Source of the DNA: Entomortierella parvispora E1425
Lineage: Eukaryota; Fungi; Mortierellomycota
Length of the DNA: 64,000 nt
NCBI GenBank assembly: GCA_020891255.1
Contig: BQFW01000010.1
Coordinates: 1,488,001-1,552,000 of the forward strand
Direction of reading: 5' to 3'
Within the stretch, counting starts at the first letter, position 1. Every line of letters starts with the position of its first letter. Both the position numbers and the translations under genes were made by a program. This document shows positions 28,488 through 34,963 of the stretch, piece by piece. The notes under the pieces were generated by a model. That model ran no database searches and had not been told where the DNA came from. It saw nothing but the letters and a program-made list of their open reading frames with translations.

Positions 28488-30842
<2,355 letters not shown>

Positions 30843-31212
30843 TGTTATGAGAGTGGAGAAGAGAGAGAGAGAGAGAAAGAGAGAGAAGGGGGAATAAGAG
30901 GGAAAGAGAGAGAGAGAGAGGAGAAAGGACGAGAAAAAGAGTGGAGAGAGAAAGAAGAGGAGAGAAAACGAGTGGAGCGGGGGAAGAATATCGGCGTTTT
31001 GTACCCGCGAAAGAAGTATCGACCGTATTGTATGAAAATCAATCGTCTCAATTGAACGCACACAGAAAGAATGAGTTGTGAGGCACAATTGGACCCATCA
31101 CGTGAAGGGAATACTTTCCCCGGCACCCCCTGGGCCCGGAGCGGTCTCAGCTTCGATTGCTCCTGTTCCTCTTTCGTTTGGTTCATTTGTTTGCTGTGTG
31201 GTCCGTTGGCTC

Positions 31213-31248: not shown

Positions 31249-31654
31249 TTGTGCCTGAGTACCTCCCTGCCTGCCCTGCCTGCCCTGCCTGCCCTGCGGG
31301 AGATCGACAGGGAGGTTCTCCCCCCCCCCTCGTTCTCTCTCCGCCATTCAGGTTCTCTTCTCTCTCATCTCTCGTTCGCTGTCTTATACAGCACCCACCT
31401 CACCGGTCTTGCGCACACGGACCAACGCAAACCCGTTGTTCCGTGGGAGCGGGGCTCTTGTTGCCGGGCAGGGGTGATGACCTTTTCTTTCCTCTTTCTT
31501 TCCTTCTCTTTCCCTTTGAAAAAGAACCCCACAATTGAAGGGGAAACTCATAAACACAAGAACAATGTTTCTTTTTTGTTTCTTTTCTTCTTATCTTGAT
31601 TTGTGTGTACAAAGAAGCAATACTCTATTTTTTTCACTCTGTTCTTCTACAACT

Positions 31655-32548
31655 CTACAATGGCTTGAAGAGGTCGGCGGTGCCATCTTTACCTTCAGCC
31701 TTCAACCCGGCCCAGGTTGCCCATTCGTCGTCTTCTCTCCATCTGGGATCCGCGCTCTTGAGCTTGATCTCCATGTCCTCCTTGAACGTCCTGCAGTTGG
31801 GTCCCTTGGTACCATCAGCGTACATACCCGTGCCCAATGGGTACAACCAGGGAAAGAGCAACGCCTCTGCGTTCTTGCCCTTGGCCTTGGCGGGCGTAGG
31901 GCAGCCGGCGACACGCAGGACACGACGTTCTTCCAGGGTCAAGTCCTGCATCTCGCGAGGGATGCGGGAGAACATGGACAGACGAGGGGCCCTGGGGATC
32001 AGGTTCTTGGGATCACCCTGCAATCCATCGCCCTTGTCAAACAGATCGTGACAGGCCTTGCAGACCTGCAAGTAAAATGAAACACAGCAGAAACGTGGTG
32101 GCATTGGTTGGGAGAGGGTTGTGGGGGAGAAAGTCTGGACATGCAGAGCCTTATTTTGATAAGATTAGATCCACGGGATGGGGTTCAAAGCCGAAATTTA
32201 CCTGGACTTTGGTGGTGTCCTTGGGGTTGAGGGTGGGGGCATCGCCCAGGATAAAGTGGATAGGCCACTTGAGAGGAGGGCGGTTGTCGAGAGCAGCAGC
32301 ACCATCTACATGTGGAGAGAGAGGAGTGGTTAGAGAGAGAGAAAGACAAACGGAAAAAAGAGTACTTCTCTGACGTGTCTCTGATGACGCCGTGTCCCTC
32401 GCCCCCCCGCCGCCGTGGCTATCTTACAGATCGTGTTGGACAGAGGCGTAGGAGGAGGCACGGCCTTGTTGGGGATATAGAAGGGAGCCTCTCCAGCAAG
32501 GAGAATCAGGCAGTTGGCGCAGGCAGCGCGGTTGTTGGAGGCGGACAT
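31655..32548 (-). CDS. small Cys-rich protein with Helitron RepHel-like (DUF6570-like) motifs; exons 32548-32428, 32305-32202, 32065-31655 (211 aa)
   Basis: Introns GTAAGA..TGTAG and GTAAAT..TGCAG give a continuous ORF with CANC, CKAC, IPREMQDLTLEERRVL, EALLFPWLYPLGTG and LKSADPRWRED. The gene model is well supported; the family call is motif-based. Confidence 0.75.
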
Positions 32549-32812
32549 GGTACAATGAGGTTGAATGAGAAGAGAACAAGCATGAATGAATGAATGAATG
32601 AATGAAGGGAGGAAGGAGATCAAGCAAGAAAAAGAGGCTAAACGGAGCACGTGATGCAATCTATTTTTTCAACGATCAATTTCGGACCACCGATGTGTGT
32701 GTCTCTTTTGTTACTGTCCCTCTGTGTGCCTGTGTCTGCTTTTCTTGTTCAGGTCCGCTTTGCTTTCATCCATCCATTCCATCTTTCTCCCTCATCCCTC
32801 AAGAACTGCACC

Positions 32813-34963
32813 ATGACCGTCTCTGAACCCACCAAGCAGGAGACCCTCGACCTGTTCAAGCGCCTCAAGTCCCAGCATGCCAACAAGGCAAGTCAAACAA
32901 GTCAACCTTCTTGCCCTTTTGTGAAAGAGTCGACCCTCCGTCCTCCCCCCTTTTTTATTAGCCTTTTATCCTTCCTGCTCTGGCAGATGATGGACCTTCA
33001 AGGATGGACAGCATGCAAGCACAGGACCCCCCTTCTTTCTCATTGTCCTACCTGTTGGATGTCTAGTCATGCAGTTGACCCAAGCACATGGACACCTCTC
33101 GATATATTCACTGACATTGCACGCAGACACAACCAGATTGGCATCAGGATGGCACATGGACACTTGCTTTGTCTGCCTATACGACAGGCCAACATGAATG
33201 TGATCCGACAAGCGACTAACCTTCTGCGACCATCCATTAGATGTGCGCGGACTGCAACGCAAAGAACCCTGACTGGTGCAGTATCCCATTCGGCATCTTT
33301 CTCTGCTTCGAATGCAGTTCTGTTCATCGCAATCTCGGCGTCCACATTTCCTTTGTCCGGTATGGAGATCACCATCTCGGCCATGGAACCTCGGTCATCA
33401 TTGTCAGGCACTCCTCAATGCTCTCTCTTTCTAACCAAGAATACATCCTCTCTATCCCTTCAGCTCTTCTCTGTTGGACTCGTGGTCGTGGGATCAGCTC
33501 CGCACCATGAAGGTCGGAGGCAACGCCGCACTGCACGAGTTCTTCAACAAGTCCATGGTGGGCAGCAGTAACAAGGACGCAAAGACAAAGTATACCTCCA
33601 AAACCGCCATCGCATACAAGGAGAAGCTGGAGCAGCGCAAGGCAGAGGACATTGCTAGGTAAGCAACGCCCTTCGTCAGGATCTGTTTCTCTGGAGATTA
33701 TCACCAGAGATCCAATTTCAGGACCGATTCGAGATTGCTCTAAATTTGCTGTTGACAGTTGACAGCCCCTGCATGTCAACAGGACATTCATGCTGGTAAT
33801 CAACAAACGTCTGATCGCCTACTTCTTTCGTCTGCCTACACTTTTTTCTTTGTAGCAACCCTGGACGTATGATCCCTGAAGCTGCCAAACCTGCCACACC
33901 CGTTGCAGCAGCTGCTGACGAAGATGATTTCTTCAACACCTGGAACGAGCCCAAGAAGCCCTCCTCCGGATCATCTACTCCCACTTCGTCCTCTACCCCT
34001 CCTCCTGTCGTCGGATTGGGCTCCGCCACCTCTTCTCCCCAGCGCACAGGATTGATCCGCCCTCAACGCTCAACTTTGACTCCTAAAAAGACTACCTTGG
34101 GCGCATCCAAGCCCATGAAGCTTGGAGTGAAGAAGGTTGGTGGCGTCAACTTTGAGGAGGCCGAGGCAAGAGCCAGAGCTGAGGCAGAGAGGATTGCTAC
34201 TTTGGGTGCCGAGGCTGCAGAGCAGGAGAGATTGGAAAAGAAGGCTGCTGCCGACAGAGCACTCCAAAGAGCTGCCGATTTGCAGAACGCTAACAAGCAG
34301 CCCCAAGCAGCCCCCGTCCGCACCAACTACTACCAGGCCAACACCGCAGGAAGCTCTGCCTCCAAGGCAAACGATGACGGTCTGGCACGACTTGGAATGG
34401 GCATGGGCCGCATGGGCTTTGGCGCTGCTCCTTCAGCTCGCTCCTCCAACTACTCTACTCCTCAAGGTAAAAACACTCGCAATCAACTGGGTCACATAGG
34501 GGGCGTCCATAGGATACGTATGTTCTACTGTTCAAATACTAATCTTTGTTTCTTTATACCCACCTCCTAGTCGAACAAACGACTGCCCGTGAAAAGTTTG
34601 GCACCCAAAAGGCTATTTCTTCGGACCAGTTCTTTGGTCGCAACAACTACGATGCCAAGGCTCAGGCCGAGGCCAATACCCGCCTTCAGTCGTTCTCTGG
34701 AGCCACCGCCATCAGCAGTAGCCAGTACTTTGGACGCGATGAGGAGCAACCTGTGGATGATGAAGGTAATTTTGAATTCACAAAATGAATATGGAGCCTG
34801 GATATGCTTGTTTGCAGTCGACTCATCTTTTATCTCGCTTTCTTTCCCTATCACAGTCGACCAGCTTAGCGCTGACTTTGCCGCCATTGGAAACGCAGTG
34901 ATGAAGGGCGCCGACCTTCTCAACGATATGATCAACGACATGTCTTCACACTATAACTATTAA
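32813..34963 (+). CDS. GLO3: ADP-ribosylation factor GTPase-activating protein Glo3/ArfGAP2-3; exons 32813-32887, 33241-33359, 33464-33658, 33856-34466, 34571-34765, 34857-34963 (433 aa)
   Basis: [61 protein letters not shown]; two Glo3 motifs ([19 protein letters not shown]). The first intron is GC-AG. Confidence 0.95.

Follow-up and report, generated by a model that had tools for sequence, protein, structure and literature searches.

A small three-exon gene of Entomortierella parvispora, designated here as gene X, is a real host gene under purifying selection. Its 211-aa product most likely descends from the non-catalytic N-terminal region of the RepHel protein of a Helitron-like element (we give this reading a rough probability of 0.8), and the source was probably a DUF6570-bearing element of the HLE2 group. 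The homology, the gene structure, purifying selection, and the phyletic spread are shown; the evidence for transcription is indirect, and only parsimony and an unrooted tree speak for the direction of descent. Throughout, the window means the whole 64-kb stretch of DNA that was analysed, and positions are those of the window.

Structure and genomic context of gene X

Gene X occupies positions 31655-32548 on the minus strand and has three exons, whose spliced length of 636 nt corresponds to 211 codons and the stop codon TAG. Exon 1 (32428-32548, minus strand) carries codons 1-40 and 1 nt of the next, with the ATG at 32548-32546; it is kept in L001, L002, and L010, as revealed by DNA comparison. 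Exon 2 (32202-32305, minus strand) contains the remainder of codon 41 through codon 75, and exon 3 (31655-32065, minus strand) codons 76-211, with TAG at 31655-31657. Both introns are of the GT-AG type: intron 1 (32306-32427, minus strand, 122 nt, phase 1) reads GTAAG...AG and intron 2 (32066-32201, minus strand, 136 nt, phase 0) reads GTAAA...AG. The putative first zinc knuckle, C10-x2-C13, is located within exon 1 (32510-32521, minus strand). The putative second one, C77-x2-C80 with H81 next to it, is encoded at 32051-32062 (minus strand) and lies at the start of a predicted helix (residues 78-84 in the model); C77 and C80 are invariant across the gene X family. Residues 103-127 (31910-31984, minus strand; S-M-F-S-R-I-P ... 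L-x-L-x-E-R-R-x-L) are the counterpart of the DUF6570 start in Helitron-like RepHel proteins. Residues 134-196 (31703-31891, minus strand) form a module matching the RepHel stretch immediately before the Pfam Helitron_like_N core, with the motif E-x3-F-P-W-L-Y-P-x-G-T-G ... K-L-x-S-x-D-x-R-W-R-x-D-D-E-W-x-x-W-A. The protein stops ~15 residues past the D-x-R-W-R-x-D-D-E-W part of this motif.

The downstream neighbour is a GUT1-like gene for an FGGY carbohydrate (glycerol) kinase (28557-30845, minus strand; FGGY_N exon at 30714-30845), and the upstream neighbour is an ArfGAP (GLO3-like) gene on the plus strand (ArfGap exon at 33241-33363), divergent from gene X. The 265 bp separating gene X from the ArfGAP gene (32549-32813) are presumed, by inference only, to be a shared promoter region. 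Just upstream of the gene X ATG, in the 5' leader or promoter, positions 32571-32620 contain 4-nt repeats of the (ATGA/TTCA) type (cattcattcattcattcattcat, minus strand). The spacer between gene X and the kinase gene contains homopolymer and CT-rich tracts at 31300-31560 (C10, TCTC runs) and shows no conservation with other genera.

Orthologues, annotated as hypothetical proteins, were found in about seven genera: Mortierella (M. antarctica, M. alpina, M. hygrophila, M. polycephala, and unnamed species), Gamsiella, Entomortierella, Linnemannia, Dissophora, Haplosporangium, and Podila. NCBI gene models of Mortierella antarctica, Dissophora globulifera, and Haplosporangium encode 210-211 aa, and their introns interrupt the frame where those of gene X do, in phase 1 after codon 40 and in phase 0 after codon 75. 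One intact copy is present per annotated Mortierellaceae genome, and one copy in the window. Pairwise comparisons among five Mortierellaceae copies gave dN values of 0.06-0.16, dS above 1.5 (saturated), and dN/dS of 0.03-0.06 in seven of ten pairs; in the remaining three, dS was too saturated to be estimated. DNA similarity between genera was confined to the gene X exons, and the flanks were not conserved. Since this similarity stops at the exon borders, there are no conserved element ends.

Gene X adjoins the glycerol kinase gene in the window, in M. antarctica, and in Dissophora, and the same adjacency is implied by fused gene models in Entomortierella chlamydospora and Mortierella sp. AD094. 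The latter are two "glycerol kinase" models within the X protein cluster, P0054 of E. chlamydospora (661 aa) and P0058 of Mortierella sp. AD094 (546 aa), in which the annotation has probably joined X to the neighbouring FGGY kinase gene. Outside the window, adjacency to the ArfGAP gene was seen only in DNA contigs of closely related strains, from four sequencing runs, and the neighbours of gene X differ in Haplosporangium and Podila.

The first-pass annotation, made from sequence alone, had described a frame-intact, three-exon ORF of 211 aa between GUT1 and GLO3 and had interpreted it as a host gene, to be refuted, among other outcomes, by a lack of expression together with a dN/dS near 1. The ORF and its flanks held: all quoted peptide stretches were found, and the FGGY_N and ArfGap exons were located. 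The status of a host gene is supported by the dN/dS values, by the conserved introns, by one intact copy per annotated genome, and by partial synteny. Synteny of the GUT1-X-GLO3 order, suggested there as a check, is only partial; the X-GUT1 pair is widespread and the X-GLO3 pair is limited to close strains.

Podila humilis has two copies of gene X, an intact intronless one (L009:1688-2461) and an intron-bearing one (L004:6244-10215). The L009 copy joins the exons exactly at both gene X intron junctions. Similarity between the two loci extends from 39 nt before the ATG to ~95 nt past the stop codon, ending at A(11), and the L009 copy carries the 5'UTR, the 3'UTR, and the A(11) remnant of a tail. 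It is a processed retrocopy of gene X. The L004 parent has decayed: its start codon ATG now reads CTG, a deletion shifts the frame in exon 3, and the first intron measures 3.1 kb. In the NCBI annotation this parent appears as a chimeric 185-aa protein (P0007). The retrocopy is intact and the parent decayed, and therefore the function was kept while the locus moved. A processed, polyadenylated, and correctly spliced retrocopy also provides indirect support for the transcription and splicing of gene X.

Similarity to Helitron RepHel proteins

A search of 1.84 billion representative proteins with a family profile built from seven sequences (cut-off of E ≤ 0.001) recovered 26 proteins, the first dozen being the gene X family; all non-family matches (E from 6e-7 to 8e-4) cover profile positions ~130-199. 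The bona fide RepHel proteins among them have E from 6e-6 to 7e-4. The ten non-family matches longer than 180 aa were scanned with Pfam, and seven of them have a Helitron_like_N match; four of these seven also have a weak REP_ORF2-G2P match. Helitron_like_N is accompanied by PIF1 in P0020 (1514 aa) and by DUF6570 and weak REP_ORF2-G2P in P0029; it is above the threshold in P0019 and P0023 and weaker, below the threshold, in P0022, P0024, and P0027. The scan of P0018, P0025, and P0028 gave no Helitron model. Profile comparison by hhalign of the family with three RepHel proteins yielded a probability of 96-97% and E of 1e-9 to 1e-11 over residues ~134-196 (E-x3-F-P-x-L-[YF]-P-x-G-x-G ... K-L-x-S-x-D-x-R-W-R-D-D-x-W).

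As an independent comparison, 33 soil-metagenome loci from one Helitron clade were retrieved. Fifteen soil RepHel ORFs match window positions 31688-31894 in tblastn (36-41% identity over ~63 residues, E down to 3e-9), and Helitron_like_N together with PIF1 was present in all three matching ORFs that were checked. Nothing Helitron-like was found by tblastn in the 64-kb window outside 31688-31894 with these 15 ORFs and all retrieved proteins, and no Rep or helicase sequence was detected in it with the full RepHel ORFs. The HUH motif, the catalytic tyrosines, and a Pif1-type SF1 helicase domain are all absent from the gene X protein.

In the three soil RepHel ORFs that were checked, only a few residues lie between the end of the X-like module and the start of the Pfam Helitron_like_N match (in L014, the module spans 403-465 and the Pfam match starts from 471). 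Pfam misses gene X because its homology falls in a stretch which the Pfam models barely cover. The exon pieces and 11 family members searched by hmmscan at E up to 10 gave no match to DUF6570 (PF20209, gathering threshold of 24.3 bits), to Helitron_like_N (PF14214, gathering threshold of 28.9 bits), or to any other informative Pfam model. The family profile searched against PDB sequences found only chance matches to ribosomal proteins.

Evidence for the N-terminal half is weaker than for the C-terminal module but points in the same direction. Residues 1-135 aligned with P0029 collinearly over 104 columns in hhalign (E 6.6e-4, probability 27%), with CANC paired to CANC, the second CxxC to the second CxxC, and S-M-F-S-R-I-P-E-x-M-Q-D-L-x-L-E-E-R placed opposite F-S-D-F-G-E-R-P-Q-E-L-E-V-L-N-L-K-E-R. 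The Pfam DUF6570 match of P0029 starts at the counterpart of gene X residues 103-127; by this alignment, gene X keeps only about the first 30 positions of DUF6570. The alignment score was 29.9 versus 12.6 ± 2.4 for residue shuffles (maximum 21.9), and none of the 300 shuffles reached it; this control is generous to the N-terminal match, since shuffling breaks the CxxC motifs. Comparison of the N-terminal half with a second Helitron clade (P0022 and a 15-sequence alignment of soil Helitron N-termini) was not significant in hhalign, and a protein homology search with the P0029 N-terminal region recovered only P0029 itself. By language-model features, 68 of the 100 nearest clusters were DUF6570 (score 0.93), with a recognition value below the reliable level of the tool. 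We consider that the N-terminal half may be akin to the zinc-finger/DUF6570 start of RepHel, with significance reached for one Helitron only.

Structure prediction by AF2 with seven sequences was unusable (shallow alignment, pLDDT 46); with 28 sequences it gave a compact single domain (pLDDT 86.9, pTM 0.84). The latter alignment comprised only the family and Helitron C-modules, and the structural match of the C-module is not fully independent. The matches of the N-terminal half are independent of the folding alignment. In a Foldseek search against 2.3 million AlphaFold DB clusters, about 20 of the 30 best matches were named DUF6570, Helitron helicase-like, PIF1, or replicase-helicase. The top match placed X residues 8-200 on residues 9-329 of a DUF6570 protein (TM 0.51 by query). 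Several matches to DUF6570 clusters span only X residues 8-125, and many others only residues 137-200 (2-3 Å rmsd). Against the PDB, Foldseek gave no match at E ≤ 0.001. A Foldseek-independent search ranked Helraiser (7lcc_A) first of 48,161 PDB chains; the match was weak (Z 3.7, 88 residues) and paired X residues 103-202 with positions 157-450 of the chain, a region which includes the Y-P-I-L-F-P-H-G motif at ~371-380.

Residues ~7-100 superpose weakly (Z only 2-3.5) on GATA, FYVE, and LIM fingers and on Cas9 HNH domains; as in treble-clef fingers of the GATA type and in the HNH beta-beta-alpha-metal fold, the second CxxC of X is located at the N-terminus of a helix. The Atlas shape search gave only low-TM matches, to HNH endonucleases; an HNH nuclease was considered as a candidate and was rejected: His57 and Asn67 are not conserved in chytrids and Mycena. 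Because the HNH-type His and Asn are not conserved, a nuclease is unlikely and a structural four-Cys zinc finger is the preferred reading; C10, C13, C77, and C80 are inferred to form it in a treble-clef-like manner.

The ancestry from the RepHel N-terminal region, as proposed by the first-pass annotation, is supported by the profile search, hhalign, tblastn, and the structure matches, which were mostly to DUF6570 and Helitron models in AlphaFold DB, with Helraiser best but weak in the PDB. The compressed motif order noted there is collinear with RepHel, its N-terminal part being less well supported, and the absence of an HUH motif and of a helicase nearby was confirmed for both the protein and the 64-kb window. 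One point needs correction here. The Pfam thresholds of DUF6570 and Helitron_like_N, the models named there for a check, are not reached, and the well-supported homology sits between these two models.

Distribution of the gene X family and rival explanations

The first-pass annotation had suggested looking for orthologues across Mortierellaceae; the family is not limited to them, and full-length relatives extend to chytrids, Mycena, and soil metagenomes. The chytrid Rhizophlyctis rosea has a relative of 211 aa with ~51% identity, and Borealophlyctis nickersoniae a 125-aa model. Relatives with 34-38% identity are present in Mycena crocata and M. rebaudengoi (three copies), and others were found in soil metagenomes. 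The chytrid, Mycena, and soil relatives all sit among ordinary genes, and the intron positions are not shared between phyla. The three copies of M. rebaudengoi (P0011, P0049, P0051) are located on one 1.8-Mb contig (L007). One of them is longer by 100 aa at the N-terminus and another is truncated; the expansion is specific to this lineage, and Mortierellaceae show none.

In a tree of the 74-column module, all 13 family members formed one clade (support 98/97) on a long stem branch, and the 26 Helitron modules fell outside it. Because all family members form one clade, the compressed architecture arose once. The tree is unrooted; midpoint rooting nests X among HLE2-type modules.

Four other explanations were weighed. 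One is that gene X is no host gene but the ORF of a Helitron-like element, either non-autonomous or in decay, that happens to lie here, as might be suggested by the two copies in Podila humilis, the three in Mycena rebaudengoi, and the different neighbours in Haplosporangium and Podila. We regard this as all but excluded: dN/dS values are low (0.03-0.06, dS saturated), the genera share their intron positions, similarity ends at exon borders without conserved element ends, each annotated Mortierellaceae genome has a single intact copy, and the window has one copy and no Rep or helicase. The extra Podila copy is explained by retroposition and decay of the parent. That the resemblance is convergent or due to chance, X being an unrelated small zinc-finger protein with a few short Helitron-like motifs, is very unlikely. 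The lack of a Pfam match, the weak PDB matches, and the likeness of the N-terminal half to generic treble-clef fingers (GATA, FYVE, LIM) and Cas9 HNH domains speak for it. Against it stand the library-wide E-values down to 6e-7, with Helitron_like_N in most matches of classifiable length, the hhalign probability of 96-97%, and the 36-41% identity to independent RepHel ORFs over ~63 residues. The AlphaFold DB matches are moreover mostly DUF6570 or Helitron proteins with the order of parts preserved.

The direction could also be reversed, an old X-like fungal gene having been captured as an N-terminal domain by a Helitron-like ancestor. The unrooted module tree with X on a long stem, the occurrence of X in three fungal phyla, and the known ability of Helitrons to capture genes (PMC4778049) would fit this reading, which we nevertheless hold to be very improbable. 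The F-P-x-L-F-P-x-G module occurs in very different kinds of RepHel, including the bat Helraiser (Y-P-I-L-F-P-H-G at ~371-380). Among the 1.84 billion representatives, no lineages other than Mortierellaceae, Rhizophlyctidales, and Mycena were found to have X. Midpoint rooting places X among HLE2-type modules, and X resembles a deletion derivative, with residues 9-329 of a DUF6570 protein aligning to X residues 8-200. A Helitron ancestry followed by horizontal spread of the gene, or of a mini-ORF on a mobile element, among soil fungi, with separate fixation in Mortierellaceae, Rhizophlyctidales chytrids, and Mycena, remains possible. It is suggested by the patchy distribution, by intron positions not common to the phyla, and by an identity of 50-59% between Mortierellaceae and chytrids versus 34-38% between Mortierellaceae and Mycena, which goes against the species tree. 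On the other hand, each lineage carries X among housekeeping genes, a faster rate in Mycena (where paralogues are present) combined with many losses could give the same pattern, and no donor or vector was found. The patchy spread over Mortierellaceae, two Rhizophlyctidales chytrids, and Mycena poses the question of ancient origin versus horizontal transfer.

Putative origin, function, and relation to known systems

According to the preferred reading, descent from the N-terminal region of a Helitron-like RepHel, X would keep in their original order the four-Cys zinc finger, the L-x-L-x-E-R helix, and the F-P-x-L-Y-P-x-G-x-G ... D-x-R-W-R-D-D-x-W module. The ~130-200 residues separating these three pieces in the transposases would have been lost, together with the nuclease and the Pif1 helicase, and the pieces are predicted by the model to fold together as one compact domain. 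Among Helitron-like elements, DUF6570 has been reported to mark the HLE2 group (PMC11417382).

There is no experimental basis for the function of X, which is inferred by analogy. X is likely to bind nucleic acids in a zinc-dependent, non-catalytic manner, given that Helraiser needs its N-terminal 489 residues for ssDNA binding and cleavage (PMC4778049). Without a nuclease and a helicase, X is unable to transpose anything. Among more specific roles, participation in another DNA transaction (transcription, replication, or repair) takes the highest share of a rough split and is still only a tentative choice. A role as a competitor or repressor at Helitron ends, also untested, comes close behind, and that of a protein-binding adaptor, though possible, ranks lowest. 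A bolder possibility, likewise untested, is that X serves specifically to counter Helitrons, either by occupying their termini or ssDNA intermediates or by poisoning RepHel assembly. Such an anti-Helitron factor would be a free-standing copy of the end-recognition domain of the transposase, and soil fungi would have kept it over hundreds of millions of years or gained it more than once. The first-pass annotation had offered a Zn/DNA-binding regulator or a dominant-negative factor of transposon defence, and neither is shown.

Hosts are known to keep DNA-binding domains of transposases without catalysis, e.g., in THAP, BED, and CENP-B-type proteins, and truncated transposases may act as repressors, such as the KP protein of the P-element. 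Unlike X, these cases derive from cut-and-paste elements of the DDE type. Full-text searches of the literature (DUF6570, Helitron domestication/exaptation) revealed no description of a host gene derived from the Helitron N-terminal region. X is a transposase-domain domestication of a known kind, from a transposon class without such a report in the literature searched. If the anti-Helitron reading is true, it would be the first host defence or regulatory protein from a rolling-circle transposon, and X is a test case for the question of whether fungi control Helitrons with transposase fragments. The family has so far been annotated only as "hypothetical protein", without a Pfam model. X, with 211 aa and a single compact domain predicted, is a naturally reduced form of the RepHel part needed for DNA binding in Helraiser; it is tractable for biochemistry and structure work, and the Helitron N-terminal region is poorly understood.

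Among known proteins, the RepHel of HLE2 elements (Helentron/Helitron2), in which DUF6570 is followed by Helitron_like_N, has the same order of parts as X: CxxC ... CxxC, a P-x-E/L-x-L-x-E-R helix, and F-P-x-L-[FY]-P-x-G-x-G ... D-x-R-[WF]-R-D-D-x-W. X differs from it by lacking the ~130-200 residues between these parts, i.e., most of the Pfam-defined DUF6570, as well as HUH, the catalytic tyrosines, and the Pif1 helicase, and by its spliceosomal introns, low copy number, and strong purifying selection. Helraiser (bat Helitron, 7LCC), the best PDB match of the X model, carries Y-P-I-L-F-P-H-G; however, it is a 1496-aa enzyme of the HLE1 type, its similarity to the model is weak, and the X profile found no match at the sequence level in the PDB. 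The RepHel ORFs of the soil contigs (L011-L043) form a diverse clade of ~1250-1320 aa, apparently intron-free. Pfam DUF6570 gave no score in any of the three ORFs that were tested, and their N-terminus has the pattern F-P-D-x-P-C-x-E-C ... C-x-x-C ... L-P-x-R-S-x-x-F-L-S-P-F.
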